A DNA stretch of 64,000 nt from Macrostomum lignano (taxonomy: Eukaryota): positions 124,001 to 188,000 of the forward strand of contig NIVC01000419.1 of NCBI GenBank assembly GCA_002269645.1, read 5' to 3'. This document shows, one piece after another, positions 5,268-49,375 of the stretch; within the stretch, counting starts at the first letter, position 1, and each line of letters opens with the position of its first letter. Position numbers and translations under genes: made by a program. Under the pieces are notes generated by a model, which searched no databases, had not been told where the DNA came from, and was given only the letters and a program-made list of their open reading frames with translations.

Positions 5268-6500
5268 TTTGCTGAAATAAAACGACAAAATACTTAAAAC
5301 CTGTTTATGGCTGTTTAACTTAGGGTGAATTGGGGAAGAAGTTAATTTGTTTTTTAAACAGATTTTTAAAAGTCATGCATATGCAGGTACTGTTGCCTTC
5401 CAGATTATGAAAATAAATCCAAAAAGGATAAGTGCTTCAGAAAGTAATTGTTGGAAATTTCCTAAGCTACAAAACTGAATGAGAAGTTTAAAAAGCAGTC
5501 TTATTTGGCACTATATAAGCCAAAATGCAAGCACAAAAATGTTTATTAATCTCAATGATTTTTTCTTAATTTAAAGATTGAAAGAAGTTTGTCAGTTTAG
5601 TGATAAAAATAGGGCCAAACAACTATTTATTTAAATAATGTAATGCTGTCATTAGTAATGTATGGAAAATTTCTTGATTTTAGTGGCTTTCTAGGGTATA
5701 TCTTTATTAGTTTTATAAGGTAACGAACAACTGATTTCAATTTTTTTCTTTTAAAGATTAGTATTTTTCGAACATTGACGATTGTTTGTATAAAAATTAT
5801 TAACATAGGTCTATCCAGTTATTAGTGAAAATAATGTATATATCTATTTCAAGTATTAGAAAAATCGACCAGGAAACACATAAAGTAAACAATAACAAAA
5901 CCTTTGCCGAAGTCACAATCAACCTCGGTTACAAATGGACCACTGTAGGGAAGCTTTATTACTTTTATTAGCTTATTACTTATTAATTTATTACTTATTA
6001 CTTAGATTATTAATTATTAGCTTTATTACTTCTCTAAGTTTTACTAAAGAATGATTCTTGACCTTTTCCAGCTTTATATGTAAAAGATAAATTCATTATT
6101 CTTTGTTTTCGGTTCCATGATTAAAATATACGCAAAAATATACTTGCAGACAGCCTTGACAAGAACTAATACTAAAGAAATAATGTTCTAACTGCCTAAA
6201 TAACAGCAAATGTGTTGTGTGGTTCTTGATGTATTATGCATTATTCATATAATTCATCTAAGAATCTACAGAAGTTGCAGCACTTTTGCTGCGCTACATA
6301 AATGAGAGATCTTTTGAAACTGAAAAGACAGAAAAATTGTGCTAGCAACAAATGTTTACATTCATTAAAAATCGTTATTTATTAAGCAAAATAACTTCAA
6401 TATCCTTATTTGCATTTCCTCAAACTCTCTGCAGTAATTTTGTATAAATTACAAACATTTAGTTTTACTTTTTACAAAAAAATTAAAAGTTGATAGATAG

Positions 6501-11112: not shown

Positions 11113-11326
11113 TCATTTATTTATTCTACAAAAAATAACTAGGTCTATAATTCATCCTAATCTTTATATATTGTCAGCTTGAATTTTTATCAATCTATCA
11201 AAATATTTCTATATAAGGAACTTTTTTTCCAGTTGCTGAAAAATCCAGCAGTTACTAAGGCATCAAGTGGAAGCAGTTCGGCTTACAACTGGATACTTTC
11301 ATCTATCCACCACTATTCAGGCCATT

Positions 11327-13238
11327 ATGCAGCTGCTTCAGCTGCCATGGCATGATGTACTTTTTGAACACATTTTATCCTGTCTTGATTTGCAAGACCT
11401 GCTTAACCTAAGAAAAGTTTCTTTTTTGGCAAGGTAAGATAGAGATGTGAATTTTTAATGCTATAAGTTTGTAAAATAATTTCTAAGTGAAGTCTAAGAC
11501 TTGCTAGATAATTGGAAAGGTAGCCTTCCAATCTGCGTTATAACTTATGTAGGTAGATAATTGATGTGATGTTTAATTGATGTTTATTCACTGAAGTCAA
11601 TGAGAAACTTTGCATAGGCTCAAAGGGGAGTTTCTGAGATGCCAATGTTTGAAAGGGGAGTTGCTGAGATGCCACGGCTAAAAAATAGTTGCTGAGAAGA
11701 TGCCGAGTCTTAAAAGGGGAGTTGCTGAGATGCCACGGCTAAAAATAGTTGCTGAGAAGATGCCGAGTCTTAAAAGGGGAGTTGCTGAGATGCCACGGCT
11801 AAAAAATAGTTGCTGATATGCCAAGGCTAAAAAATAGTTGCTGAGATGCCAAGGCTAAAAAATAGTTGCTGAGATGCCATGACTTAATGGGGACTTGCTG
11901 AGATGCCATGGCTCAATGTGGAGTTGCTGAGATGCCAAGGATCAATGGGGAGTTGCTGAGATGCCATGGCTCAATGTAGAGTTGCTGAGATGCCAAGGAT
12001 CAATAGGGAGTTGCTGATATGCGAAGGCTCAATGGGGGGTTGCTGAGATGGTTAAGCTCAGGGGGGGGGGTTCTGAGATGCAAAGGCCCAAAGGTTGGGG
12101 GTTGCTGAGATGCCATGGCTCATTGCTCAATGGAGAGTTGCTTAAATGGCATGGCTCAAATCGAGATGGCTGAGATTCTAAGGCTCAATGGGGAGTTGCT
12201 GAGATTCTAAGGCTCAATGGGGAGTTGCTGAGATGTCATAGGCGATGTCTGTTAACTGAATCTCGCTTATGTAATATCCGTTACAGTAATAATGATTTTT
12301 CTGTAGCGTTTCAGCACTGCTAAGTAAGGACTAACAAGACACAATGTGAGCAGTGCCTATCCTGTGTGAGATTGGGCTCAGAAATCAGCATAATGCTTCC
12401 TAAGGAATAAAAAAACTGTCATTGTTATTCTTTTCGGCTGGCTAATATTCTTTTTTTCCACCTTGCAAATCTTTGCAGGCAATTAGTAGACGATTATTGC
12501 GCCTGCTCAATGCGTTCGCTAGACGCTCGTGTAGCCTTTGATAACTCCGGCTACCGATTGGATAGTTGCGCATTTCGCGTATTGGCTAACAGATGCTGCA
12601 GTCTGCGCTTGCTCAGGTTTCACTCTCAGCATAGTTGGCTTGTTGACCAACTGCTAGTTCCAGTCATTCACTCCAATGTACACCTGCAAGCTGTCTACTT
12701 AGATCAGGCTCATTGGTTAACAGACTCTTCCGTGCAGGCGCTGGCCTCAGCTTGTCCTCAGTTGACCCATCTATCACTGCGCGATTGTCACTGGCTGTCA
12801 AGTTCAGGTTTAGAAATTATTGGCTCAGCTTGGCCAGACTTATCTACCTTAGATTTGACCTGCTGTTGGCAGATTGACGATCCGGGATTGTCCGCGTTGC
12901 TAACCGGTTGTCAACGCCTCGAACAGCTTAGCGTTGCTAAGTGCTACGGTTTAACAGACGAGTCGCTGTTGAATCTGCGCAGCAACAAGTGTCTAATGGA
13001 GCTGGACATGACGGGTTGCTGGCGCATCACCGATAGTTTGCTTGAACAATTGACCGAGTTCTGTCGCTCATTGAAACAACTAAAAATTCGCGAGTGCTCA
13101 AGAGTGAGTCTGGCTGCAATTGATCGGCTACAGAAGAAACGGATTGTCACTGATTTGAAACCGCCGGCAGCTTATCGCCTGTTTGCCGCTGTTGATCATA
13201 ATGGCTACCCTATGCCGCAGTTGAATGTGCAGATTTGA
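11327..13238 (+). CDS. FBXL15: F-box/LRR protein 15, 2 exons (11327-11433, 12479-13238)
   Basis: Exon 1 encodes the F-box LLQLPWHDVLFEHIL...LLNLRKVS. Exon 2 encodes Cys-containing LRRs (CPQLTHLSLRDCHWL, LDLTCCWQI, LDMTGCWRI) and ends PQLNVQI like FBXL15. AG|GTAAG donor, TTTGCAG acceptor, phase 2. Confidence 0.85.
11620..12240. repeat. Intronic minisatellite, variable ~33-40 bp units with core GGGAGTTGCTGAGATGCCA
   Basis: About 17 tandem degenerate copies inside the FBXL15 intron. Confidence 0.9.
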
Positions 13239-13440
13239 TTTGAGTTAAACATGACATTACATCATGACACATGACATCATGTGAATACTTACAAGCATAC
13301 TTACATAGACTTCACTAGAAATATGAAACTTGCGCTTGTGATTTCGTTTAAGATGGGTATTGCTTTGATTAGTCGAAATGAGAATTAACCGCGCTATAAC
13401 AGGGTGCAAACATTAGTTGTCTGTTTAAGCATGAACATTT

Positions 13441-13837
13441 ATTCACAGATGCTAAAATAACTAGATGGGCCACTCATGCATATATACTAAGTAAACAGCT
13501 TTCTACTTCCAGTTCAGTAGCAAAGAAGAATGCATAAGCTATTTTATAAAAAAGGCAGCTGAAATGACTTTGATAAGTTTAGTAGCCCAAGCTTGCAGGC
13601 GTAAACAGCTTGCTAATTGGTCCAGCAATAATGTACATTAGCCAGTCCACGGAGATGTACATGGCAGATTTAGGCTGGAATTTCAAGAAAGGCAATAAAA
13701 TTTTTGGCGGGGCGGTTATATGAGCCTTAGCTTTAAAAATACATTACAATGCTTCAGTTAAACTTACTACTGAAGTGAAAGTAGCTTAGATGCAAATGTG
13801 CTGAGTGGCCCATCTAGTTATTCTGGTATCCGTGAAT
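13441..13837. mobile_element. MITE, ~400 bp, with ~36-bp imperfect TIRs
   Basis: ATTCACAGATGCTAAAATAACTAGATGGGCCACTCA vs the reverse complement of TGAGTGGCCCATCTAGTTATTCTGGTATCCGTGAAT. TSD is not clear. Confidence 0.6.
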
Positions 13838-14149
13838 TTATTCTACATATATTCATAAAATTTTAGTTATAATAGTTATTGAATTATTATTGTGAAAGCT
13901 TGCGTTATGACACATCAACTTAAATTTTGACATCCTTTATTTGGACCCCAAGGATGCCAAGTGGGCACACTGATTCTGATGCTTTAGAAGACGCAGATTT
14001 TATAAAATATACTGGATTGTTTTACATGTACCGGTATAGTGTGTATCACATATACACCAATGTTATCTTTGATATGAGTTTCTTTGCTTCATTTTGAATA
14101 TCAAACAATTAGATAAAAGTTTTACCAATAAAATTGATACATACTACTA

Positions 14150-14395
14150 AACTCCCCCCACTCAAATACTCTACCACTATAATCGCCCCTACTCAGATAA
14201 TCTGCCACTAGAATCACCCCCCCCCTACTCAGATTATCTACCACTAGCATCACTCCCCTACTCAGATAATCTACCACTAGCATCACCCCCCCTTCTCAGA
14301 TAATCTACCACTAGCATCACCCCCCTTACTCAGATAATCTACCACTAGCATCACCCCCCCCTTTACTTAGATAATCGACCACTAGAATCGCCCAT
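14150..14395. repeat. Minisatellite (~36-39 bp, CTACTCAGATAATCTACCACTAGCATCACCCCC) just upstream of SAP18
   Basis: About 6 tandem copies. Confidence 0.85.
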
Positions 14396-14479
14396 TATGA
14401 TACTATCTGTTTTTATTTATAAAAAAGTATAGTTTGCATCATTAAACATTTCTGCTAAGCTTTGCTTACCTAGTCTAAC

Positions 14480-16027: not shown

Positions 16028-16184
16028 TCTGGGTTGCTGGGTTATTGTTTTTTATTGTAGGCAGCCTCGTCAATATAAATACTCGTAATATTATTATTGT
16101 GTAATATAGTGGTCACTGTGCGTAATTATGGTTGACATTGAAACCCCTCGACCGGACGTTAAGCGAAGAGTTTAAACTGAAAAC

Positions 16185-16975
16185 CTGAAAATTGGGATTA
16201 TAGTCCCAACCGGAAGCTGATAATTGGGATTAGAATACAATGAAATCCCAACCGGAAGCTGATAATTGGGATTAGAATACAATGAAATCCCAACCAGAAG
16301 CTGACAATAGGGATTAGAATACAATGATATCCCAACCGGAAGCTGATAATTGGAATTAGAATACAATGAAATCCCAACCGGAAGCTGACAATTGGGATTA
16401 GAATACAATGAAATCCCAACCGGAAGCTGACAATTGGGATTAGAATACAATGAAATCCCAACCGGAAGCTGACAATTGGGATTAGAATACAAATAAAATC
16501 ACAGCCGGAAGCTGACAATTGGGATTAGAATACAAATAAAATCACAGCCGGAAGCTGACAATTGGGATTAGAATACAAATAAAATCACAACCGGAAGCTG
16601 ACAATTGGGGTTAGAATACAATGAAATCCCAACCGGAAGCTGACAATTGGGGTTAGAATACAATGAAATCCCAACCGGTAGCTGACAATTGGGATTAGAA
16701 TACAATGAAATCCCAACCGGTAGCTGACAATTGGGATTAGAATACAATGAAATCCCAACCGGTAGCTGACAATTGGGATTAGAATACAATGAAATCCCAA
16801 CCGGTAGCTGACAATTGGGATTAGAATACAATGAAATCCCAACCGTTAGCTGACAATTGGGATTAGAATACAATGAAATCCCAACCGGTAGCTGACAATT
16901 GGGATTAGAATACAATGAAATCCCAACCGGTAGCTGACAATTGGGATTAGAATACAATGATATCCCAACCGGAAG
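16185..16975. repeat. 42-bp minisatellite CCGG(A/T)AGCTGACAATTGGGATTAGAATACAATGAAATCCCAA
   Basis: About 19 copies downstream of the SAP18 stop. Each unit has an internal inverted repeat TTGGGATT/AATCCCAA. Confidence 0.95.
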
Positions 16976-17873
16976 GGGACAACAGGGATTAAAATGAGAG
17001 GAAGTACCAGCCGGGACTGGGAAGTGGGGTTATAGTAAGATCGAATTCCAATGAGAAGTTGACAGATTTCTATCTACTTCAGAAGTTCCATTAGAATCGT
17101 ATGCGCACTCAACCACCGACTCTTCACTTGTGTTGTTAATGTACTTTTGTATGCTTAAATAATAATAACTAATCTGTCAACTAAGAATGACACGGCTTTA
17201 CAGCATAGGATGCTATTAAGAGTACAATAAATGCCTTTGCTGGGCCCGTGCTTAAGCGCATTTTTTATAGTAGGACTTTTAAAGTACATTTATTTGGCAT
17301 TCGTTTGAATTAATTAAGCTACTGTTTGTTAAGCATATTGATGACTGTTAGACTGATTCAAATGCTTAAGAAATATTAGGGGTTTGTTAAGGAAATTAAC
17401 TAGATATGCTACCGATAGTAAGTAGTATTCTTATGTAATTGAAAATTATTTCAATATAAAATTTGATGGCAATTAAAATATATCTTCAATACTGGTGTCG
17501 CTTTTTAGTAACTACTACTAAGTAACTAGTGTGGGCCTTGGTTTTCTTTATTTGTCTGTTACCAGCAAAATAGCTGCAGTAAATATCTACAGGGCTTTTG
17601 TGTTAGTCATCGGGATTCAGCAAGGAAGCAAGCAGACATACCCGTAACCCTGACTCATCGTGTGGGTACACTCCAACTACTGCCTATTTCGCTGACTGCT
17701 GAATACATACAAGCTCGCCAATACTTGCAGGGTGTACAGTGGCCTTTTGACTTTCTTATCGGTCAGGCATGTACACTCTGTGTCTTGAAAAGTGGGCTCT
17801 GATAGGTGCGAATCGCTCATTTATTCCTTTCACGAGCATCAAATGAAAAACTTTCTACTTTCAATAGAGTATA

Positions 17874-18135
17874 GGTTGTAGCCTATAGTGGTTAGAGCGT
17901 CGGACTCACCGACTTGAAGGTCGGGGGTTCGATTCCCGATCCCACTCGGACCAATTTGTGTCCTTGAGCAGGACACTTGATTCTCTGCATTGCTTCAGTT
18001 CAATCGGCTGTAAAATGGGTGCCGGTGTGTGTGGTGAACCCCCCCCTCCCCATTCCTTGGACTGAACAGCCGTACGCAGCCTTTAGATTAGCCTATTAGG
18101 GCAGGTGCAATCAATATTATTAATTTGTTATTATA
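17874..18135 (+). mobile_element. tRNA-derived SINE with CORE-like central domain
   Basis: A-box-like TAGTGGTTAGAGCG and B-box GGTTCGATTCC, followed by GTGTCCTTGAGCAGGACACTT...CTGTAAAATGGGT (resembles the CORE domain) and an AT-rich tail. No acceptor-stem pairing, so not a tRNA gene. Confidence 0.7.
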
Positions 18136-18158
18136 TCAATAGCGCACAAATTCAGTAG

Positions 18159-19669
18159 TATGTATCCAATGGCCAACAATTTCTGGCTGCAACAGCCCTC
18201 GGCCTGGGGCTGGAGCGGCCCTCTCGGGTTCGGCAAACAGCCGCCCCAGTTGACGTCACCGGAGTGAGCTTTCAATGCTACAGTACGGAGGAAATTCGTC
18301 GACTGTCAGTGAAAGAGATTAACCGTGTGGAGACATTTGACAGATTGACAGGCTACAGGCTGGACTTTGGTCTGTACGATCCCGATCTGGGTCCGCTGGA
18401 CGAGCGGGACGTATGCAGAAAATGCAGTTTAGGCTACTGGCAGTGCGGCGGCCATTTTGGCCATATTGAACTGTTCAGCCCGGTACTGCATCCGATGTTC
18501 TTCGATCTGGTGTTCAAACTAATCAGAGCCAAGTGCTTCTATTGTCACAGATTTGCTGTTAAATTAGATTTTAGACGATTGGTTCGACTGCAGTTCTTAG
18601 CGTTAGGCCTGTCTGATGAGAGCAACCCGCTGCTGTTGGCTGATCAGCTGGCTTCTATCTATGCTGCTCATCACAGTGTCAGGTGCGTAGATTTGTTATT
18701 TTATTATTTAATCTCTATCCGATGCAAAAATAAGACTTTCTAAGAAACGCCTCTATCCGTTACAAAATAAAATTTTCTAAGAAATGCCCCCATCCGTTAT
18801 AAAAATAAGGCTTTCTAAGAAATGCCCCTATCCGTTACAAAAATAAAGAATTTCTAAGAAACGCCTCTGTTAAAAAACAAGACTTTCTAAGAAACGCAAC
18901 TATCTGTTACAAAATAAGACTTTCTAAGAAACACCTATCCGTTGCAAAAATAAGACTTTCTATAAACGCCTTTATGTTTTAAAACATCGTAAGACTTTCT
19001 TAGAAACGCCTTTATCTGTTTCAAAACATCGTAAGACTTTCTAAGAAACGCCCGTACCCATTTAATTATCAATTATGTTTCTAAGAAACATCTGTCTGTT
19101 TTGAAACAATCCTTTCTAGGAAACGCCCGTACCCATTTCATTGCCAATGATGCTTCTAAAAAGCGCCATTTCTAAGAAAATGGCCCTATTTTTTAATAAA
19201 CAAACTGTCTATAGAAATTATCTATCCCTATTCCGTATTTTCTTTTAAAAATGAATTGATAAATTTTGTTTAGCTTCATGGCCATCAAATCCCATTCGAA
19301 GTTTTCCTTTCGATAAAAATTTGCCGTTTATTCTTTCAGAGAAGCAAGCGCCAATCGAAAGGCACAAAACGATGGCGAAGAGTTTACTGGCGATATTGAC
19401 GAGGAGCTGGTGAAGGAGGCTGAGTCGGGTGCCAGATCTACTGACATCGGCTGTCTGGACCGGCTGCAGGTGGGTCGGGCAAACACTGAGGCACTTAGAC
19501 AGATACAACACTTGTAAGACAGACGGGCAGACACTAAGACAGATACAAGACACTAAGACAGACAGACAGACAGACAGACAGGCAGACAGATAGACAGACA
19601 TTAAGACATACAGAGAGACAGGCAGGCAGGCAGGCAGACAGACAGACAGAGAGACAGACAAAGACACTA

Positions 19670-19706
<37 letters not shown>

Positions 19707-19896
19707 GGCAGGCAGACAGACAGACAGACAGACAGGCAGGCAGACAGACAGACAGACAGACAGACAGACGACAGACAGACAGACAGACACAGACAGACAG
19801 ACAGACAGACGACAGACAGACAGACGACAGACAGACAGACAGGCAGTCAGACAGACATTAAGACAGACAGACAGACAGGCAGTCAGACGGACATTA

Positions 19897-19971
<75 letters not shown>

Positions 19972-20014
19972 GAGACAGACAAAGACACTAAGACAGGCAG
20001 GCAGGCAGGCAGGC

Positions 20015-20079
<65 letters not shown>

Positions 20080-23000
20080 GGCAAAGACACTAAGACATAC
20101 AGGCAGGCAAGCAGGCAGGCAGACAAACTGACTGACTTAATCAGAGATAGACGGTTTAAGACACCAGGAACACAAGCGGACACTGAGACTGAGACAAAGA
20201 CAGGAACAGTTGATATTCAAAAAGAAGTCAGTGAAGTTCCTTGAATAATTTCAATACCCCGATCCCAACAACAAAACGCAGATGGCATTCGACGCGGCCG
20301 TAGCTTCGCCGAGCCGGCGCCGGCAGCCGCAGCCAACTCCGGGCATCGTACACATGCGCCGGGTTGAACTAGCCAAATCCGTCATGCACCTGTTGACCTC
20401 CCGAGCCAAAGGCAAATGCCCGCATTGCGGCTGCCGCAAGCCCGGCCTGCAGCACAAGCACAAGGCCGATGTCTACTTGGCCTCGGCCAGGTCCGGGTAC
20501 ACCGAGTCCCCGATGCTCCGCGCCAGCCGCCTAGCCAGCAATGTCGATGAGCTGATCGACACTATTGTCGAAGAAGGTCATCATCAGTCGTTGCTACCCG
20601 ACGATGGCAACGAAAATGCAGTCGAAAATGTCGCTCCGTCGCTTCTAGACGACACTCTGACCGCTGTGCTGGCCGAAGCCGCCGCCGAAGCCAAGGCCGC
20701 CGAGCCGCTCGACGCTGCGTCGTTGGCGGCGGCCGGCGGAGCGTCGACTGCCGACGGTTCGACAGTTGGACACGAGTCGCGAGTCCTGACGCCGCTAGTG
20801 CTGCGCGATCACCTGCGCTGCTTGTGGACGGAAGAATGGGAGATCCTCGGCGCCCTGTTCCCCTGCCTGACAACCGGCCAGTCGCGGGGTCGCCAGTATC
20901 CCACCGACCTGTTCTTCCTTGAGGTCATGCCGGTGCCGCCGCCCATTTGCCGGCCGCCGGGTCACGTGTCGCCGAACAGTCCGCTGATTGAGCATCCGGA
21001 GACCTCCAATTTGTCCAGCGTCCTGCGTCGGTCTCTGGATTTGTCAGCGATTGTGCGGGACTCGCTGTTTGAGGCCTCTCAGCCTGCCAAGTGGCATGCC
21101 AGTCACGTGCAGGTTGGTCATCTATCTGCCTGTCTATCTGCCTATCTGCCTAACTATTTTCCTGTTTATCTGCCTGTCTATCTGCCTGCCTATCTGCCTG
21201 TCTATCTGCCCATCTATCTGCCTATTTATCTGCCTATCTATCTGCCTATCTATCTGCCTATTTACTTGCCCATCTATCTGCCTATTTATCTACCTATCTA
21301 TCTGCCTGCTTATCTTCCTATCTATCTGTGCAAGCATCCATTTGGCAGGTTATCCAGTTATCTGTGCTACCAATAGTTTTGTTTATTTAAGAACTGTCAA
21401 TATAAACTCATCAATTCTGTTCTCTCCCGCCGCAGGCCACGGTGGCTCTGCAGAAGGCTGTCAACGCCTGCTACGACAGCCGACTGTCCGACATTGGTCA
21501 GGCTGCCGCGCCCGGACTCAAACAGCGGTTGGAGAAGAAGGAGGGCCTGCTAAGAATGCACATGATGGGTATTATGAGAATGGGTTTTATGTGTCTGTTT
21601 AATCTACTGATTTAAAGCTAGTATACAATTCATGCTTATATTTCTAACTTGGCTTGATGGGCAGATTATTTTTGTAACAGATATAGGCGTTTCTTAGAAA
21701 GTCTTATTCTTGTAACAGATAGGGGCGTTTCTTAGAAAGTCTTATTTTTGTAATAGATAGGGAGTTTCTTAGAAAGTCTTTTTTTGTAACAGATATAGGC
21801 GTTTTTTAGAAAGTCTTATTTAGATTTTTATAAGGGATAGGGCCTCTCTTAGAAAGTATTATTTTTGTAACGGATAGAGGCCTCTCTTAGAAAGTCTTAT
21901 TTTTGTAACGGATAGAGGCCCCTCTTAGAAAGTCTTATTTTTGTAACGGATAGAGGCCCCTCTTAGAAAGTCTTATTTTTGTAACGGATAAAGGCCCCTC
22001 TTAGAAAGTCTTATTTTTGTAACGGATAGAGGCCTCTCTTAAAAAGTCTTATTTTTGTAACGGATAGAGGCCTCTCTTAGAAAGTCTTATTTTTGTAACG
22101 GATAGAGGCCCCTCTTAGAAAGTCTTATTTTTGTAACGGATAAAGGCCCCTCTTAGAAAGTCTTATTTTTGTAACGGATAGAGGCCTCTCTTAAAAAGTC
22201 TTATTTTTGTAACGGATAGAGGCCCCTCTTAGAAAGTCTTATTTTTGTAACGGATAAACGCCCCTCTTAGAAAGTCTTATTTTTTGTAACGGATAGAGGC
22301 CTCTCTTAGAAAGTCTTATTTTTGTAACGGATAGAGGCCCCTCTTAGAAAGTCTTATTTTTGTAACGGATAGGGGCCTCTCTTAGAAAGTCCTATTTTTG
22401 TAACGGATATGGGCCCCTCTTAAAAAGTCTTATTTTTGTAAGGGATAGAGGCGTTTCTTAGAAAGTCTTATTTTTGTAACGGATAGAGGCGTTTCTTAGA
22501 AAGTCTTATTTTTGTAAGGGATAGAGGCGTTTCTTAGAAAGTCTTATTTTTGTAAGGGATAGAGGCGTTTCTTAGAAAGTCTTATTTTTGTAACGGATAG
22601 AGGCGTTTCTTAGAATCTTATCTCGGAACATTTCTAGAAATCGTCTTTTTAAATATGATTTTTTAAGGGCCATTCTTTTAGCAAAATGCATAGCTGTTTC
22701 TCGGAAATACCCCTTTAAATATAACCTTTCGTAGAAAGCACCTTTTGAAACATAACCATTTCTACGAAAATGTATTGTGTACGAGCTAACTACGATTAGT
22801 TCTAAGAAACTTGAACAACCACCATAAACCCTGAAACCCTTTTCTTCTAAGATTATTGTACTCGTACGATCACTTCTTCTAAGAAACAGCGAAATCCGGT
22901 TAAAGAAAAAACATTTCTCAGAAAACGTCCCAGTTGATTTTAACAAAAAACTGTTTCTAAGAAACTTCCTCATCCATATCAATCTCCTATCCTCACGCGC

Positions 23001-26000: not shown

Positions 26001-29000
26001 GTCTGTCTGACTGTGTCTGTCTGGGTGTGTCTGTCTGACTGTGTCTGTCTGACTGTGTCTGTCTGGCTGTGTCTGTCTGACTGTGTCTGTCTGACTGTGT
26101 CTGTCTGACTGTGTCTGGTTGTCTGTGTCTGTCTGGCTGTGTCTGTCTGACTGTGTCTGTCTGACTGTGTCTGTCTGACTGTGTCTGGTTGTCTGTGTCT
26201 GTCTGACTGTGTCTGTCTGGCTGTGTCTGTCTGACTGTGTCTGTCTGGCTGTGTCTGTCTGACTGTGTCTGTCTGACTGTGTCTGGTTGTCTGTGTCTGT
26301 CTGACTGTGTCTGTCTGGCTGTGTCTGTCTGACTGTGTCTGTCTGACTGTGTCTGTCTGACTGTGTCTGTCTGACTGTGTCTGGTTGTCTGTGTCTGTCT
26401 GACTGTGTCTGTCTGGCTGTGTCTGTCTGACTGTGTCTGTCTGATTGTGTCTGTCTGGCTGTGTCTGTCTGACTGTGTCTGTCTGGCTGTGTCTGTCTGA
26501 CTGTGTCTGTCTGACTGTCTGGTTGACTGTGTCTGTATGATTGTGTCTGGTTGACTGTGTCTGGTTGACTGTGTCTGGTTGTCTGTGTCTGTCTGGCTGT
26601 GTCTGTCTGGCTGTGTCTGTCTGGCTGTGTCTGTCTGACTGTGTCTGGTTGTCTGTGTCTGGTTGTCTGTGTCTGGTTGTCTGTGTCTGTCTGACTGTGT
26701 CTGGTTGTCTGTGTTTGTCTGACTGTGTCTGTCTGACTGTCTGGTTGTCTGTGTCTGTCTGACTGTGTCTGTCTGACTGTGTCTGTCTGGCTGTGTCTGT
26801 CTGGCTGTGTCTGGTTGACTGTGTCTGTCTGGCTGTGTCTGTCTGGCTGTGTCTGGTTGACTGTTTCTGTCTGACTGTGTCTGTCTGGCTGTGTCTGTCT
26901 GGCTGTGTCTGTCTGGCTGTGTCTGTCTGACTGTCTGGTTGACTGTGTCTGTCTAACTGTGTCTGTCTGACTGTGTCCGTCTGACTGTGTCTGTCTGACT
27001 GTGTCTGTCTGACTGTGTCTGTCTGACTGTGTCTGGTTGACTGTGTCTGTCTGACTGTTTGTATAACTGTCTGATTGACTTTAAGACTGTGTCTATCTGT
27101 GTCTGGTTGACTGTGTCTCTGTTTCTCTTATTGCGTGCCTGTCTGCCTGCCTGCCTGCTTACCTCCCGTTAATAAAGCGCCTGAATCTCCCACACAGATG
27201 GAACTGGACGCCACGGTGACCTCCAGAGTGAAGTCGCTGCAAGACCGCGTGTGCGAGGAGCTGATGCCCGGCCGCCTGATGGTCCCGTTCCCGGCCAACA
27301 ACCTGCAGCTGATGATCCACTCCGGCGCCAAAGGCAGCCAAGTGAACGCCCAGCAAATGTCCGTAGCTCTGGGCCAAATCGAAATCGAAGGCCGTCGAAT
27401 GGCGCCAACTTTGTCCGGTCGAACCTTGCCGTCGTTTCCAGCGTACGACACGCATCCACGAGCTGGCGGTTTCTGCTCCGCCAGATTCCTCACCGGCCTG
27501 CCGCCGCAGGAGCTGTTCTTCCACACAATGGCAGGTCGGGACGGGCTTATTGATACGGCCGTGAAAACCTCTCGATCCGGCTATCTGCAGCGTAGCTTAA
27601 TTAAACACCTGGAAGGCTTGGCGGTGCAGTACGACTTGTCGGTGCGCAACTCCGATGGTAGTATTGTGCAGTTTCTCTACGGCGAAGACGGCTTGGACGT
27701 GGCTAAGACTCCGTTTCTGCAGCCGGCTCGATTAGATCTGTTTGCCGACAATTGCCAGCTGTTTGCTAATCGGACTGGTCTGGGGGTGAGCTGTCCTGAC
27801 TGTTCCTTATGGCGCTTTTTGTGATCCTAATGGCGCTTCTTTGTGATCCTAATGGCGCTTCTTTGTGGTACTAATGGCTCTTCTTTATTATCCTAATGGC
27901 GCTTCTTTGTGATCCTAATGGCTCTTCTTTATTATCCTAATGGCGCTTCTTTGTGATCCTAATGGCTCTTCTTTATTATCCTAATGGCGCTTCTTTGTGA
28001 TCCTAATGGCTCTTAATTTTGATCCTAATGGCGCTTCTTTATTATCCTAATGGCTCTTCTTTATTATCCTAATGGCGCTTCTTTGTGATCCTAATGGCTC
28101 TTCTTTATTATCCTAATGGCGCTTCTTTGTGATCCTAATGGCTCTTCTTTATTATCCTAATGGCGCTTCTTTGTGATCCTAATGGCTCTTCTTTATTATC
28201 CTAATGGCGCTTCTTTGTGATCCTAATGGCTCTTCTTTATTATCCTAATGGCGCTTCTTTGTGATCCTAATGGCTCTTAATTTTGATCCTAATGGCGCTT
28301 CTTTGTGATCCTAATGGCTCTTCTTTATTATCCTAATGGCGCTTCTTTGTGATCCTAATGGCTCTTAATTTTGATCCTAATGGCGCTTCTTTATTATCCT
28401 AATGGCTCTTCTTTATTATCCTAATGGCGCTTCTTTGTGATCCTAATGGCTCTTCTTTATTATCCTAATGGCGCTTCTTTGTGGTACTAATAGATCTTCT
28501 TTATTATCCTAATGGCGCTTCTTTATTATCCTAATGGCTCTTCTTTATTATCCTAATGGCGCTTCTCTGTGATCCTAATGGCTCTTCTTTGTGATCCTAA
28601 TGGCTCTTCTTTGTGATCCTAATGGCGCTTCTTTGCTATCCTAATGGCTCTTCTTTGTGATCCTAATGGCTCTTCTTTATTATCCTAATGGCGCTTCTTT
28701 GTGATCCTAATAGCTCTTCTTTGTGATCCTAATGGCGCTTCTTTATGATCCTAATGGCTCTTAATTTTGATCCTAATGGCTCTTAATTTTGATCCAAATG
28801 GCGCTTAATTTTGATCCTAATGCAGGGGTCGGCAAAGGTTTTAATCTACTTGCGGTCAGAGGTGGGGAGAAAGAGAGAGAAATAAGGAAGATAAGATCTC
28901 CACCCCTCTAGCTGCTGCTTAAACAAATTTCTTCCCAATTAATATTATCATCTTCATAATTCCTAACCCACCGCAGACCAAACTCGAAGCCGACCAAGAA

Positions 29001-32000
29001 GATCCCACCGATTGGTTCGGCGTCAATCCCAATTATAACAATTCCAAATCGTTGCGACGTGACTGGCGCCTGGCCCGGCGCGAGACCCGATTGAGCACCA
29101 GAGAGTCTCGCATCGCCGAGGTTCTGCAGCTTGACGCCGAAGATGACAACCAGTACTACAGTGTCCGGCGGTCTACCGCCTGTCCGGTGCTGTCCAAGCA
29201 TCCGCCTCATCTGGTGCTGGGCTCGGTGTCCGAGTCCTACCGCGACACCGTGCTCAAATATGCCGAGAAAAGATTCACGGATGCCGATCAGAGCAGCACC
29301 GCTGAACAGTTTCAACGCCTGATGTGGCACCGGGCTCGAGCTTCGCTAGTCGATCCGGGCGAATGCGTCGGCCTGCTGGCATCACAGAGTATCGGCGAGC
29401 CATCAACTCAGATGACGTTGAATACGTTTCATTTTGCTGGCCGCGGCGAGGTCAACGTGACGCTTGGTAATTTGTGTTTCTAAGAAGGCACAGAGAGTGT
29501 ACAAGCCAGGGCCGATGTACATGTACACCCTGTGTGAGCCTGCGTTGTCTGCTCCCCGTTGAAAACGTGACAAGACTCTTTTAAGTCTTGGTCGGCTCTT
29601 TCGCTATTCTACAACTTCCACTTAGCGACTCCTATTGCGGTAAAAAAAACTTGTTCAATACTCCCAATCTCTACAGGTATACCTAGACTACGAGAAGTGC
29701 TCATGACCGGCTCGGAGACAATTAAAACTCCTCTAATGGTGCTCAAAGTATTGCCGCACGTGCCCGACTCGCCAGAGCTTAGCCATCGATTGGAGCAGCT
29801 TATTCGGCGGTTTAACAAGGTTCTACTTGGCGAATTACTGCAACAGATCAGCGCCACTCATCTGCACATGCAGCGGGCGCTTAAATTCACTTTTCAATTT
29901 AAACGCCGATCAGCCTATAAAGCCAAAACTTTTCTGCGGCCTGAACAGGTTTGAAATTTTATTACTATTCAACAAAAGTTCCACTTCCGGTTCGATAAAA
30001 TATAGTTTCTATTTCTTTACAACTTCGAATTCTTATCCACTAGTCCCTTCTGATCCGCTACTGATTACACTTCCGGTCCGCTAATACAGATTACACTTCC
30101 GGTAGGCTAATACAGATTACACTTCCGGTCTGCTAATGACGTAGATTACACTTCCGATCCGCTAATATAGATTACACTTCCGGTGCGCTAATGTAGATTA
30201 CACTTCCGGTCCGCTAATATAGATTACACTTCCGGTTCGCTAATGCAGATTACACTTCCGGTGCGCTAATGTATATTACACTTCCGGTCCGCTAATATAG
30301 ATTACACTTCCGGTCCGCTAATATAGATTACACTTCCGGTCCGCTAATATAGATTACACTTCCGGTCCGCTAATGCAGATTACACTCCGGTCCGCTAATA
30401 TAGATTGCACTTCCGGTCCGCTAATGCAGATTACACTTCCGGTCCGCTAATGCAGCTTACACTTCCGGTTTGCTAATGCAGCTTACACTTCCGGTTTGCT
30501 AATGCAGATTACACTTCCGATCCGCTAATGCAGATTACACTTCCGGTCCGCTAATGCAGCTTACACTTCCGGTTTGCTAATGCAGATTACACTTCCGGTC
30601 CGCTAATAAAGATTACACTTCCGGTCCGCTAATATAGATTACACTTCCGGTCCGCTAATGCAGATAACACTTCCGGTCCGCTAATGTAGATTAAACTTCC
30701 GGTCCGCTAATGCAGATTACACTTCCGGTCCGTAAATGTAGATTATACTTCCGGTTGCTAATGCAGATTGTACCTCCGGTCCGATAATTCAGATTGCACT
30801 TCTAATCCGATACTGATTTGACTTGCGGTTCGCTAATAATTACTCACTTCTGATATCCTACAAACCGCCCCTCCCAATATTCCATTTGTTTTCAGGCCAT
30901 GCGCTTTATCGAAACGAAATTCCTGCCTCGTCTAGCCAAAGAAATCGAAGTCCGCGTCAAAGAACGCGTCTCCGAGTCCGTGCTCCGAGCTCTGGCCAAT
31001 GCGGCCTCCGACATTGTCGGCGGGGGCGGCGGGGGCGGAGTCGCTGACGACATGATGAACGACGTTGACCGTCGACACGGCAACGGCAACAACAAGACTG
31101 AAGCCGAGGACGAAGACTATCGCGAATTCGAAGCCGAGGACGCCGAGCGATCTGAGCTGCTAGCCGAAGGCTTGGCCGTCAGCGACGCTGAGGAAGGCGA
31201 CGAAGATGTTGACGACATGCCTGGCGGCGAGCATCGACCAGCGGCAACTGTTCGCGGCGAACCGTCGCTGGAGCCGCGTCGAGTCTTCGACGGCTCTGCT
31301 GCTGCGGCGGCGGCGGCAGCGGCGGCGGCTGCCGACGAAGAATCAGACGGTGGAATCGGCGACACGGCTGCCGCTGCAGCGGACGACTCGAAGAAGGCGT
31401 CAACTGGGCTGAACGCCGACGAGCGAGTCGGCATGGTGAAGAAGCTGCATCCCGCCTTTCTCAACTACTCATTCGATGCTGGTAAACATCGGAGCTGCGA
31501 GCTGACCGTGGCGCTCAAGGATATTGAAGGTCGGCTGGATTTGGCCAGTCTGGTTGGTCAGCTGGCCGAGAGCAGCGTGGTGCACAAAGCGCCGAAGGTT
31601 GGTGCAGATTGTTTTCTTCCACTACTTCCCTGATAATCTCCAGTCTCTTCTCTGATAATCATCCCCACTTTCTTAGAATAGTCCTAGGAAGAGACCCTTT
31701 TAAGAGCCAATCTGACCCTAAACTACCCTTTTAAGAGCCAATCTGACCCTAAACTACCCTTGTAAGAATCAATCTGACCCTAAACTACCCTTGTAAGAAT
31801 CAATCTGACCCTAAACTACCCTTGTAAGAATCAATCTGACCCTAAACTACCCTTGTAAGAATCAATCTGACCCTAAACTACCCTTGTAAGAATCAATCTG
31901 ACCCTAAACTACCCTTGTAAGAATCAATCTGACCCTAAACTACCCTTGTAAGAATCAATCTGACCCTAAACTACCCTTGTAAGAATCAATCTGACCCTAA

Positions 32001-33223
32001 ACTACCCTTTTAAGAATCAATCTGACCCTAAACTACCCTTTTAAGAGCCAATCTGACCCTAAACTACCCTTTTAAGAGCCAATCTGACCCTAAACTACCC
32101 TTTTAAGAGCCAATCTGACCCTAAACTACCCTTGTAAGAATCAATCTGACCCTAAACTACCCTTGTAAGAATCAATCTGACCCTAAACTACCCTTGTAAG
32201 AATCAATCTGACCCTAAACTACCCTTGTAAGAATCAATCTGACCCTAAACTACCCTTGTAAGAATCAATCTGACCCTAAACTACCCTTGTAAGAATCAAT
32301 CTGACCCTAAACTACCCTTGTAAGAATCAATTTGACCCTAAACTACCCTTGTAAGAATCAATCTGACCCTAAACTACCCTTTTAAGAATCAATCTGACCC
32401 TAAACTACCCTCTTGAGAATAGCCCTGACTCTCGATTCAGATTCCTAAGAATCGCTCCATGAATCAACAACCCCATTAAAATCCCGAACTCTACAATGCA
32501 CCTGTCCAGGTGGAACGAGCCAGCCTAGACAAGTCCAAACTGCCCTGGATACTCCGCGTCGAAGGCGTCAACCTGGATTTAGTTCGTCCGCACAGCGACT
32601 TGCTTGATTTAAACTCCGCCTACACCAACAACATCCGGGTGATGCAGTCCGCCTACGGCATCGAAGCCGCCGCCAGTTGTATCGTTCGCGAAATTCGCGA
32701 CGTATTTAAGCACTACGGCATCGGGGTGGACCCGCGCCATCTCAGCCTGGTGTCGGACTACATGACCAACAGCGGCACCTATCTGGCGTTCAGTCGCCAC
32801 GGCATGATCGGCCAGCCGTCCGCTCTGCAGCGAATGTCGTTCGAGACTTCGTCGGTGGTGCTGAAAGACGCCGTGCTGGCCGCCGCTCGAGACGACATGC
32901 GGTCGCCGTCGGCTTGCATCATGGCTGGCAGGCCGCCCGTAGCCTGCGGCACCGGCTCGTTCGACCTGTTGCACCTGTTGCCGTTGAGCGCTAAAAAGTC
33001 CAAAGGCGCCGAGTCTGTCCGACTTGGCCCAGTCGAGGCCGTGTCGATGGGCCGGGCCGGTGACAAGTCGGCCGCTGACAAGTCGAAACAGATTTTATCG
33101 CCGAAGCAGCAACACCATCGGCATCGCCATGGTAATAAAATTGTTAGCAAGTCCAAACAAGAACCTATCGATCAGGTGGTGCTTGATCACGAAGATGAAG
33201 CTCTGCTGCTGAGCTCGGATTGA
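18159..33223 (+). CDS. POLR1A: RNA polymerase I largest subunit; exons ~18159-18682, 19340-19469, 20282-21112, 21436-21568, 23006-23414, 24211-24403, 24505-24708, 25324-25833, 27198-27785, 28977-29466, 29677-29948, 30896-31597, 32510-33223
   Basis: Zn motif CRKC...[10 protein letters not shown]; [13 protein letters not shown]|[14 protein letters not shown]; catalytic [10 protein letters not shown] (24263-24292); [24 protein letters not shown]; [18 protein letters not shown]; QRMSFETS...GTGSFDL. The acidic insert and ends are Pol I type. All 12 introns are GT-AG and phase-consistent. The start codon is unresolved. Confidence 0.95.
18727..19190 (+). repeat. ~38-bp minisatellite AAGACTTTCTAAGAAACGCCTCTATCCGTTACAAAAAT (POLR1A intron 1)
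   Basis: About 10 increasingly degenerate copies. Same family as 21668-22615 but in opposite orientation. Confidence 0.9.
19490..20130. repeat. (GACA/GGCA)n microsatellite (POLR1A intron 2)
   Basis: Directly visible. Explains the VCLS-repeat ORF at 19245-20183. Confidence 0.95.
21121..21365. repeat. (TATCTGCC/TGTC)-type 12-bp degenerate repeat (POLR1A intron 3)
   Basis: Directly visible. Explains the IYLP-repeat read-through of the ORF at 20282. Confidence 0.9.
21668..22615 (-). repeat. 38-bp minisatellite TTATTTTTGTAACGGATAGAGGCCCCTCTTAGAAAGTC (POLR1A intron 4)
   Basis: About 24 copies; reverse complement of the intron 1 array. Confidence 0.95.
23495..23800. repeat. 20-bp minisatellite GTAAGCTGGGTGTCTATGGC (POLR1A intron 5, 5' half)
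   Basis: About 14 tandem copies. Confidence 0.93.
23905..24177. repeat. 22-bp minisatellite CACCTGACTGTCTGTAATGCAA (POLR1A intron 5, 3' half)
   Basis: About 12 essentially identical copies ending ~33 nt before the acceptor. Confidence 0.95.
24740..25140. repeat. 32-bp minisatellite GATGCTGTAGTAGATTGTTATCCACTCTACCC (POLR1A intron 7)
   Basis: About 12 copies. Confidence 0.93.
25870..27125. repeat. TGTC-rich 10/14-bp compound repeat (CTGACTGTGTCTGT) (POLR1A intron 8)
   Basis: Fills almost the whole intron. Confidence 0.95.
27815..28820. repeat. 22-bp minisatellite with alternating variants TCCTAATGGCGCTTCTTTGTGA / TCCTAATGGCTCTTCTTTATTA (POLR1A intron 9)
   Basis: About 45 units with 44-bp higher-order periodicity. 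Confidence 0.95.
30045..30810. repeat. 26-bp minisatellite GATTACACTTCCGGTCCGCTAAT(AT/GC)A (POLR1A intron 11)
   Basis: About 29 copies. Confidence 0.95.
31700..32410. repeat. 31-bp minisatellite AATCTGACCCTAAACTACCCTTGTAAGAATC (POLR1A intron 12)
   Basis: About 23 copies. Confidence 0.95.
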
Positions 33224-34532
33224 TAAATCAATGCCTTGAAACTATAATAAAAATCCATCTTAATTGATAGTCGATTTAATAAGTGAAGCGAGTCCAGTCA
33301 ATTAAAGTACTTTTAATATAATATACTAGTAATCATTTTTAACCTGCATTTTATTGCGTTGCGTTCATCTATATTGTTGTTTCCCATTTGTTTATGATTA
33401 CTTATAACAATTTCCCGAAAGAAATCATGTCTCTGGTTGTTAGGTTTCGAATTGGTTTTGTTGCTTGAAAGAAAATGGAAAAAAACGTTGGTCAACCCTT
33501 TTTTTCCTCAAAGGCGCGTGCATTTTGGTGCGAAAAATCTTATCTAAGAGATTTCACTGCGTCTTCGATGGCAACATGTTGCTGTCTTTTTTGGATTAAA
33601 GTTTCCGTGTGTTTTTCTTTTATTTCTTTTCCTAGTTTAAAGGGCAAACTTCTTTACCTGAAGGTTCAGAGAGAAGGATAAGAGAAAAGATAAGAAGAGA
33701 TAAATCGAGGGAAGAGGGGGATAGAAGACGAAGAGAGCTGCGAAGACACACACAGACCTTGAGCGGGTCGTATTGTTAATGTAAAGTGTCAAGGGACCCC
33801 CCGAGAGATGCTTTGCAGCAATTGCGGGCCCACGGGCTGGTCCATAGAAGGCTATAAGACTGCTTTTGCTTTTTAACAAAGTAAATATAATAGAATGCTT
33901 ATATTCAAACTAGACACATGGGGCCGTATGCAGAAAGCCTGGTCCAGACTAGCTAGTCTGGACTTGGGTAGTTCAGTCTATAGTCTATGGTCTAGCTACC
34001 CTAGTTCTGCTATAGTAGACTGATCTAACTTTGTGTTTCTGCATACCAAATCCAAGTCTAGACTAGCTTTTCAAGACCGGACTACCCTAGATTTTAGTAT
34101 CCCGTATATTCAGATAATTCTCTCCCAACCCCAATCCAATAGTGTGTACATTTGTACACCCTCGCATAGGCAACGCAAGCGTGGCGTTTGAGAGAGGTGG
34201 GTGACTCGCCAATCTAAAAATATACTGTTCACTGCTCCTTAGTGTACACTTGCTGCAGCGGGGCGGGGCTAGACTCTAGAAAATAGCTATGTTGCTTTTC
34301 TAAAAGCGAAAATTATGTTTGCACTGTACAGTCAGTTAGTCTATCTTTCTCTATCTTGGTACCTTGTTTAGCGGAAAATTGAAAGCAGAAAGGCTTAGAT
34401 TTTTCTGTTTGAATCCGCCTAGTTAATTGCATTCTTGATATTTAACTTACCCATGCTCCCACCCTCCTCCATTGCAAGGTTCACCGTAAAAAGGCCATAC
34501 TAGAGCCTAATAACTAACAGAGCATTGCACGA

Positions 34533-37500
34533 ATGGCCCAGCAACCAGGTGGGCCCGAGTTGCAGCGTCAGTGCCAACCGCACAGCATAGTGTCAGAAGA
34601 AGACTTCGTTGTGATTGCCGGTAGCGGAGGTTCTTCCCCCTCGAGTCTGCAGTCTCCCGGTACGGAGGCCACAGACTACCAGCTGTCTCTGACCGCTGCA
34701 ACTGCCTCATCATCATCGGAGTCTGAGCTGCAGAAGATAGCCCAGCAAATCAGCCAGGTGAGCCAGCAGCAGGCCAGTCTGCACGACAGCCTGAGAGACA
34801 ACAGCGGAAGTCTGGAGCAGCTTCGCAACCTGATGCGGGAACGACAAGCCGAGATGAAGAAGAAGCTGGCAGACAAGGATGCTGAGCTGGGAGAAAAGAC
34901 TGAGCAGTGCGAGGCTCTGCTAGCCAGCAGTGAGCAGATGAAGGCCGAGTTGGCGAGGCTGCGCACCCGAGAGGAGGAGTGGCAGCAGACCAGCGAAGAC
35001 TACCAGAAACTGAAGAACCAGTACAACCTGCTGACCAACACCAAGGAGCGCCTGGAGTCTGAGAAGGCCGACCTGCAGCGCAGCAGAGATGAGACGCTGG
35101 CGGCTGAGACTCAGAAGCTGCAGGCCAAGTTTGATGAAGAACGAAGCGCAGCGGTGGAGGCTGAGCGAGACAAGTGGCAGCAGGAGTTGGCTGAGCTGCA
35201 GGCCAATCACGCTGCTGAAGTCAAAGCGCTACACCTGGAGCTGACAGGTGCAAAGAAGGAAAATGAAGGCAACTTGCAGGCTGCTCAGGCTGAGAATGAG
35301 CGGGCGCTGACCTCAGAGCGGGAGAGATGTCGAGCAGAGGCTGACAGACTTGTTGCTGAGCACTCGAGCGCTATTGAAACGATGAGGAAGGAGTTTGAGG
35401 AGAAAATCCGAGAGCAGGAGAGGCTGACCGAGGAAGCCAAGCGGGAACTGCAGGAGCTCAGCGAGAAGCACGAGGCAGAGAAGGCCGAGATGTTTGAGTT
35501 GGTTAAGCAGTTTGGTGTGAGTAGCTTCTCCACCGATAACTTCAGAAGCAACGATGCTGGCACGATGACCGACTCCTCTGCTTCTGGTGGCAACTATCCC
35601 GAGCTTCACGAAGTCCGGACAGTGCTCAGTAGGCAAGCAGTGCAGGAGCAGGGAGTGAGCCCCGCTGAGTCAGTCGCGGGCCCTCCGGGTGTGGGTGTCG
35701 CTGTGGCCTCCATTGCGGTTTCGGTCTCGCGATCTGATGCGGGTACGTCAATGGACGATTCTTTCAACAGTGTTGTTGATCAGTCTACGAGCACGTCTGA
35801 GACTGCTGATGGACAAGAAGAAAGTTCTTCAAGTAATGTTGAAGGTTCCGGAGCTGTTGACCAGTCACAAACTACTGAAATCGAAGTCAAAACAGTGGAG
35901 AGTCAGACAGATCCTTTGGAGTGCCCGCAAATTGAAAATTCCGAGTCGCTTCAAAAGAACAGCGCCACCAGAAATTTGACCATGCAGTTGGCTTCATTTG
36001 CTGCTTCATTGAAGACTGAGAGACAGAAAGTGGAGGATTTGGAGACCAGGTGCGTTTGTTTGCTGGTTTTGAATGGCCTGTTACCATGTAGTTTAGGTAC
36101 AAGTTAAAAGATCAACTTGGTCGTAAACTTTAAATCCTAGAACGGTGTTAGATGTAGAGCCTCCAACTATGGTCCCTATCGAGGTCAATATTCTATAAAA
36201 ACCTTTTTTGGATTATTCTAGATACCCTGTGTGAGTGCGTGCCTGCGTGTACAGTATTGGCGCACTTGTACATGTGGTCAGGAGTCAGCTGAATGGTCAG
36301 AATTGCCTCAGAGCCTCAGGCTGTGGGACCATGTCTGAACTAATTTTCAGCAGCAGAAGAAAAAAGGGGAAATCTAGGCAAGATTCTGCTCTGCTGATAT
36401 CCATCTGAAATTTTTCTGCAATTCTTTTCAGCATCAAGAAACTTGAGAAGGAGAATGCCACGCTCAAACAGACTACCAGTCAGACTCTGAGTAAGAAACA
36501 GAATGAAGAGTCTGTTAGTGTGCTGCAAAAGCAGCTCGATGAGAAGCAGAGCGAGCTGGACAGTGTGATCAAAGACCTCGATGAGACCCGTAACAAAGTG
36601 TGCGAGCTTACTGAGAAAGTTAAGCACTATGAGAGTCAAAAAATGAAGCGAGCGGTGCACGGCGAGACGGTTAGCGAGAACTCAGATGCTCAAAAAGATG
36701 AAGCAATCCGGGAGCTGCGTAAACAGCTGGAGGAGAAGCAGATGGAGCTGGACAGTTTGCTTCAAGACTTTGATGAGACTCGGCACACGGTCTACCAGCT
36801 CAATGAGAAGGTCAATGAGTACAAGAGTCGGTGAGTGATGCTGACGACAACATACATGTACCACTTTTAGTACACGGAATAAAGTTTTAAGATTGAAGCA
36901 TGAAAAAAGTTTAAGACGAGAAATCCCAGTTTGAATTGCATCCCAGTTTGTGCAGTTCATAACCGCTTCTTGTGCAAACGTACTAAAATCATTAGACTTT
37001 ATTAGTCAGTGAGTTTCTACGGGAGCTGATGAAACCCGCCAATCTCCAGGGCGGAGCAGCGGGCCCAGCTGGCCAGCAGTCGCGCGTCTGCCGACCGCGG
37101 CACCGCCGCCGCCACCGGCAGGCTGGAGAAGCTGCTGGCAGAGAAGCAGGTAGAGCTGGACAGCGTGCTCGAAGATTTTGACGAGACTCGACACAAAGTC
37201 TACGAGCTCAACGAGAAGATTAAGGACTACGAGAGACGGTAGAGCATTGGGACCATATATTCACGTCCGGGTTCGTCGCTTCATTATAACAAATTTGTTC
37301 GATTTTCCAAATTCCAGAGGCGACCGTCGCGACAACGTCGCCAACGTTCGAGCCGACGGAGACGTCAGCAAGCTGCAGACTCAGCTGACTAAAAAGCAGG
37401 AAGAGCTGGACAGCTTGACTGAAGATCTGGACGAGACTAGGCATAAAGTGTACGAACTGAATGAGAAGGTCAAGGACTACGAGAATCGGTGAGCTTAGGA

Positions 37501-49351: not shown

Positions 49352-49375
49352 TCAGCGGTTGAAAACCTGTCTATC

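Follow-up and report, generated by a model that had tools for sequence, protein, structure and literature searches.

Predicted spliced-leader initiation of POLR1A, and a doubtful operon, in a four-gene cluster of Macrostomum lignano

The locus and its copies

The window analysed is a 64-kb stretch of the genome of the flatworm Macrostomum lignano (assembly Mlig_3_7, GCA_002269645.1; contig NIVC01000419.1, where the record coordinate is the window coordinate + 124,000), and the subject is a cluster of four housekeeping genes in it: FBXL15, SAP18, POLR1A and a coiled-coil gene referred to here as gene 4. A first-pass annotation had taken the cluster for a polycistronic unit resolved by spliced-leader (SL) trans-splicing. 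The genes are consecutive in the order given, all on the + strand and without an opposite-strand gene between them, and the distances from each stop codon to the next coding sequence (CDS) are 1241, 2131-2158 and 1309 nt (spacers 1, 2 and 3, respectively). This layout, which the first-pass annotation had described with spacers of 1.2, 2.1 and 1.3 kb, was borne out by the gene models, the coordinates and the existing annotation. The gene identities are backed by Pfam and, for POLR1A, also by solved RNA polymerase I (Pol I) structures. These identities, the coordinates, the reading frames and the comparison of paralogs were observed here; the SL flag for POLR1A was taken from published work. The four genes are as follows.

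11327-11433 and 12479-13238, + strand: FBXL15 CDS (F-box and LRR), 288 aa; the model exactly matches PAA83442.1
14480-14812 and 15734-16027, + strand: SAP18 CDS, 208 aa; the spliced model is 100% identical to BOX15_Mlig016079g4
18159 or 18186 to 33223, + strand: POLR1A (RNA polymerase I largest subunit); annotated as a Met-less CDS of 1889 aa from 18189
34521 or 34533 to 39599, + strand: coiled-coil gene 4, BOX15_Mlig031107g2; annotated model of 911 aa

Two further copies of the locus were found, one on NIVC01001245 (L002) and one on NIVC01001246 (L005/L004), and the gene arrangement is the same in all copies. Identity between copies is uniformly about 95% across exons, introns and spacers. 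As divergence between the copies is only about 5% all along the locus, the retained gene order is uninformative on the question of an operon, and the paralog comparison was dropped as a test of conservation, having no power at this uniform level of identity. Rfam and tRNA scans of the 64-kb window found nothing, and it holds neither an SL RNA gene nor a copy of the SL.

Start codons and candidate splice acceptors

A single 35-nt spliced leader, CGGTCTCTTACTGCGAAGACTCAATTTATTGCATG, is used in M. lignano, and it ends in ATG (PMC8629364). Two positions upstream of the annotated POLR1A CDS have to be considered as acceptors for it (a slash marks the splice junction here and below).

18151-18158, + strand: POLR1A acceptor of the first-pass annotation, TTCAGTAG/TAT; frame 0, common to all copies, 27 nt upstream of the paralog site
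18180-18185, + strand: POLR1A acceptor position, TTTCAG/GCT in both paralogs; here TTTCTG, AG absent

Frame 0 of POLR1A is open from 18159, directly after the TAG, and the first in-frame genomic ATG is codon 113. Residues 32-156 align with RPA1/A190 (residues 10-135) as seen in solved Pol I structures, and the aligned stretch includes the zinc-binding CxxC...CxGHxGH motif, which lies ahead of the first genomic Met. As this conserved N-terminus precedes codon 113, the initiator must come from upstream. POLR1A (Mlig016987.g2 and.g3; 6053 nt) has been listed as TRANSSPLICED and placed in the stringent neoblast class (PMC5816591); the Mlig016987 prefix was linked to the POLR1A family via BOX15_Mlig016987g1, a partial copy on NIVC01001245. 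The CDS is 5'-partial in all three copies. In L005 the Met-less CDS (1890 aa) starts exactly after the junction AATTTCAG/GCTGCAACAG, where the acceptor fits the consensus perfectly and is in frame 0, and L002 has the same CAG. The leader joined to the L005 acceptor reads ATG GCT GCA ACA..., ie MAATALG.... That the terminal AUG of the SL is the POLR1A initiator is predicted from the frame, the alignment and the published flag, and is well supported. The general claim of the first-pass annotation, that a leader ending in AUG is able to act as the initiator, agrees with a leader that ends in ATG and a POLR1A gene with no usable genomic start. Essential POLR1A is, in M. lignano, a clear case of dependence on the leader AUG.

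The acceptor that had been named for POLR1A fared less well than the start codon. The need for an SL AUG stands, given the TRANSSPLICED flag and a first Met at codon 113, but TAG/TAT is probably not the main acceptor, to judge from TTTCAG/GCT in the paralogs. It is that AG which is lost from the window: positions 18183-18185 read CTG, against CAG at 13351-13353 of L002 and 16131-16133 of L005, and the difference may be genuine variation or may come from an error in the assembly. Both sites (18158/18159 and the equivalent of 18185/18186) are in frame 0 with no intervening stop. With CTG at this position the window copy of POLR1A would have to splice at the weaker TAG, in frame and 27 nt upstream, or else would be defective, and it may be impaired. 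SL-trimmed reads begin after the acceptor, and the published mapping allowed up to 1000 locations per read (PMC5730564), so multi-mapping reads would fall on the window copy whether it can be spliced or not. That is probably why its CDS is annotated from 18189 despite the lost acceptor. In a duplicated assembly, then, a copy that bears an SL flag, POLR1A of the window for example, need not be functional. Many of the POLR1A introns (18713-32411) are filled with differing mini- and microsatellites (periods of 4-44 nt, arrays of up to 1.2 kb), and owing to these intronic arrays a CDS of 5.7 kb is spread over a gene of 15 kb.

A Met-less model also bears on gene 4, the acceptor of which is as follows.

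34511-34520, + strand: gene 4 acceptor, TAACTAACAG/AGC; in frame, 12 nt before the ATG, identical in a second copy

UniProt A0A1I8G4J5, an M. lignano model without an initial Met, begins SIARMAQQPGG..., ie with the first codon after the CAG at 34520. Maximal upstream extension of the open reading frame (ORF) would add one codon (Q), after an in-frame TAA. The model starts at the acceptor and not at the maximal ORF, and so its boundary looks transcript-derived. From this model we infer SL use at gene 4; the acceptor proposed for it in the first-pass annotation is supported, indirectly, by a start at exactly that point. In frame with the gene 4 CDS, the leader AUG would place MSIAR ahead of the annotated Met. 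The N-terminus of the product carries EEDFVVI, a LIR-like motif. The annotated 911-aa product runs into an intron and stops at 38658, while the UniProt model (1174 aa) continues to 39599; the GenBank model is probably truncated. A paralog of gene 4, BOX15_Mlig010584g2, lies at positions 1-2133 of the window and has in common with it the coiled coil at the centre and, towards the C-terminus, the region ...EKRK.E.LYKKLCEQSE.RL....

For FBXL15 and SAP18, which have their own ATG, the sites to be assessed are listed with that of CCDC65, the annotated neighbour on the other strand.

11313-11320, + strand: candidate FBXL15 SL acceptor, CTATTCAG/GCC; in frame, 6 nt before the ATG
11221-11232, + strand: alternative FBXL15 acceptor, CTTTTTTTCCAG/TTG; consensus-type, out of frame, 94 nt before the ATG
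14466-14473, + strand: candidate SAP18 SL acceptor, TTACCTAG/TCT; in frame, 6 nt before the ATG, identical in three copies
5271-5290, - strand: CCDC65 acceptor, TTTATTTCAG/CAAAATG; perfect consensus, 4 nt before the ATG, out of frame with the leader AUG
ending at 5270, - strand: CCDC65/NYD-SP28, annotated neighbour, divergent to the four-gene cluster

The four acceptor-like strings on which the operon had been built are present before FBXL15, SAP18, POLR1A and gene 4 as described, all in frame with the CDS and with no stop between. They had been picked post hoc. Within the window, 30% of all ATGs have an in-frame, stop-free AG no more than 12 nt upstream, and 16.5% have a YAG. The top trans-acceptor motif of M. 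lignano is [T/C]TNCAG, carried by 9551 of 21754 sites (PMC8629364). It is matched by none of the four strings in the window (ATTCAG, ACCTAG, CAGTAG and TAACAG) and is matched by the CCDC65 site and by the POLR1A site of the paralogs (TTTCAG in both cases). Since fewer than half of the true sites carry the motif, a non-match does not exclude use of the four sites; the consensus hexamer is itself frequent, with 380 matches in the window. Of the trans-spliced mRNAs of S. mansoni, only 28% have the leader AUG in frame (Cheng et al. 2006, as cited in PMC9851317), so an in-frame position is no mark of a real SL site. The CCDC65 acceptor makes a similar point. It had been noted in the first-pass annotation as lying 4 nt upstream and out of frame; it is present, and it is the best consensus acceptor of all the genes compared. 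CCDC65 is probably SL-spliced too, on the strength of this sequence. Being divergent, CCDC65 cannot be a downstream operon gene here, and yet it has the best acceptor, which indicates that such sites do not imply operon membership. An AG in frame before an ATG is no evidence for trans-splicing.

At FBXL15 the CAG of the candidate site is CAA in L002 (at about 6360, equivalent to window 11319-11320), and CTTTTTTTCCAG/TTG, 88 nt further upstream, is the better acceptor and is kept in three of three copies. FBXL15 of L005 is annotated as a 252-aa 5'-partial CDS starting at the exon-2 acceptor (L005 10000-10001, equivalent to window 12478/12479). This start may be an internal SL site, giving an F-box-less product, or a fragmented model; other flatworms are known to have SL acceptors of this internal kind (PMC12582326). 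TATA-like sequences occur 110 nt upstream of the FBXL15 site (TATATAAG, at 11210) and 55 nt upstream of the SAP18 site (TATAAAAA, at 14418). In the AT-rich spacers TATA-like heptamers are expected by chance at 28-38% of positions, and a count of such boxes is close to the chance level. No RNA-seq-derived (Logan) contigs were present in the 90% clusters of SAP18, FBXL15, POLR1A and gene 4, which held only NCBI and UniProt entries. A Logan SAP18 transcript (L003, SRR21676472; 58% identity, from an AT-rich organism) was dropped, having no recognisable leader. Of the four genes, POLR1A and gene 4 have support for trans-splicing, and the FBXL15 and SAP18 acceptors remain candidates.

Spacers and transcription units

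About 30% of M. lignano genes are trans-spliced, and 60% of the trans-spliced genes lie outside operons; among conserved genes about 45% are SL-spliced (PMC8629364). Operons are common and their intercistronic spacers are inflated by repeats. After adjustment for repeats the intergenic distances of SL genes are bimodal, with the main peak at about 100 bp, and an operon call requires that both genes be SL-flagged and that the repeat-adjusted distance be below a threshold of 1 kb (PMC8629364). Two-gene operons account for 75%, three-gene operons for 18%, and those of four or more genes for about 7% (PMC8629364). To obtain the gene models, assembled transcriptional units (TUs) were cut into genes at read-mapped SL and poly(A) sites, and a common name prefix is given to TUs that cluster at 95% identity (PMC5730564); the authors caution that TUs are split at repeats (PMC8629364). 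The spacers of the present cluster contain the following features, among them elements resembling a short interspersed element (SINE) and a miniature inverted-repeat transposable element (MITE).

14127-14132, + strand: AATAAA, possible FBXL15 poly(A) signal; kept in three copies, directly before the minisatellite
14154-14393, + strand: spacer 1 minisatellite, 34-nt period; length varies between copies
16204-16995, + strand: spacer 2 minisatellite, 42-nt period
17871-18040, + strand: spacer 2 tRNA-derived SINE-like element, with the POLR1A acceptors about 150 nt downstream; degenerate tRNA fold (relaxed ARAGORN)
33936-34083, no strand assigned: spacer 3 inverted repeat, MITE-like; 32-nt arms, 78% complementary, 84 nt apart

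Between the spacer 1 minisatellite and the SAP18 site there are 80 nt of unique sequence. The core of the spacer 2 SINE-like element (...GTGTCCTTGAGCAGGACACTTGA...CAGTTCAATCGGCTGTAAAATGGGTGCC...) bears what we take to be a resemblance to the MIR/CORE-SINE core, and the element is partly absent from L002. In spacer 3, a CCAAT, a TATA-like box and GGGGCGGGGC lie approximately 260-310 nt upstream of the gene 4 acceptor. A comparison of the spacers with other parts of the window revealed no dispersed repeats in common. The repeat-adjusted lengths, estimated with presumed poly(A) sites, are about 80 or about 520 nt for spacer 1, about 750-1170 nt for spacer 2 and about 770-915 nt for spacer 3. The POLR1A transcript of 6053 nt implies a 3' untranslated region (UTR) of about 380 nt, which leaves about 0.9 kb to the gene 4 acceptor. 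Outside the cluster, one and the same 2.16-kb sequence stands on either side of a 690-nt run of N (49376-50065), at 47218-49375 and 50066-52224 (99.7% identity); the duplicated flanks are most likely a scaffolding artefact and not a real tandem duplication.

No two of the four genes share a TU prefix, the names being Mlig025847/Mlig022397 (FBXL15), Mlig016079 (SAP18), Mlig016987 (POLR1A) and Mlig031107 (gene 4), ie the published assembly did not join them. POLR1A is present in the stringent neoblast class, from which the IDs of SAP18, FBXL15 and gene 4 are absent (366 table rows, covering essentially all 357 clusters; PMC5816591). In the supplementary table rows of M. lignano papers that were covered, POLR1A alone of the four appeared, and none of the IDs was found in the paper texts searched. 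From the annotation names, the spacer lengths and the expression class we infer separate transcription. Our reading, to which we assign a probability of roughly 0.55, is that the four genes are not one transcription unit and that POLR1A and gene 4 are SL-matured. At least these two would be matured by trans-splicing of the single 35-nt leader, and the AUG at the 3' end of that leader would serve POLR1A as initiator. Each gene, or at most an adjacent pair (FBXL15-SAP18 or POLR1A-gene 4), would be transcribed alone, with the leader replacing the outron. Several points weigh against this. Given the authors' warning that TUs are split at repeats, different prefixes tell only weakly against co-transcription. 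Should the AATAAA at 14127 be the FBXL15 signal, FBXL15 and SAP18 would be only about 80 nt apart after repeat adjustment, which is the operon mode, and the estimate for spacer 3 is below the published 1 kb threshold. The chance of finding an in-frame YAG within 12 nt at three of three genes with an ATG is 0.165 cubed, which is somewhat unlikely.

The interpretation put forward in the first-pass annotation places a single promoter upstream of FBXL15, from which a four-gene polycistronic pre-mRNA would be converted to four mRNAs by SL trans-splicing and polyadenylation, the spacers being repeat-inflated. In its favour are the uninterrupted same-strand run of genes, kept in all copies, and SL-splicing of POLR1A and, it would seem, of gene 4; operons are common in M. 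lignano and repeats inflate their spacers (PMC8629364), and minisatellites, SINE-like and MITE-like elements do lie within the spacers here. The part of that interpretation which concerns the SL AUG at POLR1A and the gene 4 acceptor is supported. The polycistronic unit itself is unsupported, in view of four TU prefixes, long spacers and an expression class of POLR1A that differs from the others. Operons of four or more genes are only about 7% of those in M. lignano, spacer 2 is still about 0.75-1.2 kb after repeat removal, the retained order of copies about 5% diverged says nothing, and the FBXL15 and SAP18 SL sites remain candidates. The four-gene operon is unproven, the accessible annotation leans against it, and we regard it as improbable. 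Least credible of the readings considered is an elaboration of it, in which a four-gene SL operon with spacers inflated by minisatellites and SINE/MITE elements exists in copies that are losing acceptors (POLR1A here, FBXL15 in another), as early divergence or pseudogenisation of duplicated operon copies in a hidden-polyploid genome.

Smaller units come out as somewhat more probable. One or two adjacent pairs, FBXL15-SAP18 and POLR1A-gene 4, might be co-transcribed with no four-gene unit, and 75% of M. lignano operons are pairs. For FBXL15-SAP18 the AATAAA at 14127, kept in three copies, is followed by the minisatellite and then by 80 nt of unique sequence before the SAP18 site, although TATAAAAA 55 nt upstream of that site is compatible with a promoter of its own. 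For POLR1A-gene 4, with roughly 0.75-0.9 kb between them, the 3' UTR of about 380 nt leaves a distance of about 0.9 kb, under the published 1 kb rule, although the CCAAT, TATA-like box and GGGGCGGGGC of spacer 3 stand some 260-310 nt before the acceptor. The TU prefixes differ within each pair and the poly(A) sites are presumptive. Such partial operons seem to us rather unlikely, and so, at much the same level, does co-transcription of at least one pair. A more serious possibility, if still short of an even chance, is that the FBXL15 and SAP18 acceptors are chance AGs and that both genes give conventionally capped mRNAs with short 5' UTRs from TATA-type promoters, without SL trans-splicing. 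The background rates of 0.30 (AG) and 0.165 (YAG) are in keeping with this, as are TATATAAG and TATAAAAA upstream of the two sites, the loss of the FBXL15 AG in L002, the non-consensus TAG of the SAP18 site, and the figure of only about 45% for SL-splicing of conserved genes. TATA-like heptamers, however, occur by chance at 28-38% of spacer positions, and a YAG with a pyrimidine tract directly before the ATG is typical of SL-spliced genes; moreover, the SAP18 gene numbers (g2 and g4) hint at a TU cut at an internal site.

Relation to known systems

The significance of these results is mainly one of annotation. SL trans-splicing, SL-AUG initiation and repeat-inflated operons have already been described for flatworms and for this assembly, and the SL-read, poly(A) and 5'-end tracks for M. 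lignano are public. SL genes and operons were mapped genome-wide with SL-read data in the same organism, assembly and with the same leader (Wudarski et al. 2017, PMC5730564; Grudniewska et al. 2018, PMC5816591; Ustyantsev & Berezikov 2021, PMC8629364), and so the kind of finding is already published. The published picture is one of same-strand conserved genes with repeat-inflated spacers, and the four-gene locus is like it; it is an ordinary stretch of the M. lignano genome. It differs from the published operons in that two of its spacers are near or above the 1 kb limit and its genes fall in four TU clusters.

POLR1A can be compared with the 'slORFs' of S. mansoni, where more than 40 cDNAs with SL-AUG-initiated frames were described (Cheng et al. 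2006, J Biol Chem 281:733, as cited in PMC9851317). Likewise, POLR1A has no genomic initiator and an acceptor in frame, and the 3'-terminal AUG of the leader would have to start translation. Among the four genes it is only POLR1A that lacks a genomic in-frame AUG for a conserved N-terminus; FBXL15, SAP18 and gene 4 have their own ATG. The species is different, and in the window the consensus acceptor of POLR1A is mutated (CTG).

In the SL2-type operons of Caenorhabditis elegans a polycistronic precursor undergoes 3' end formation at the upstream gene, with trans-splicing about 100 nt downstream. An operon model for the present cluster would share that logic. In contrast to C. elegans, there is only one SL in M. 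lignano, where downstream genes bear no SL2-like marker, and the spacers here are 10-20 times longer.

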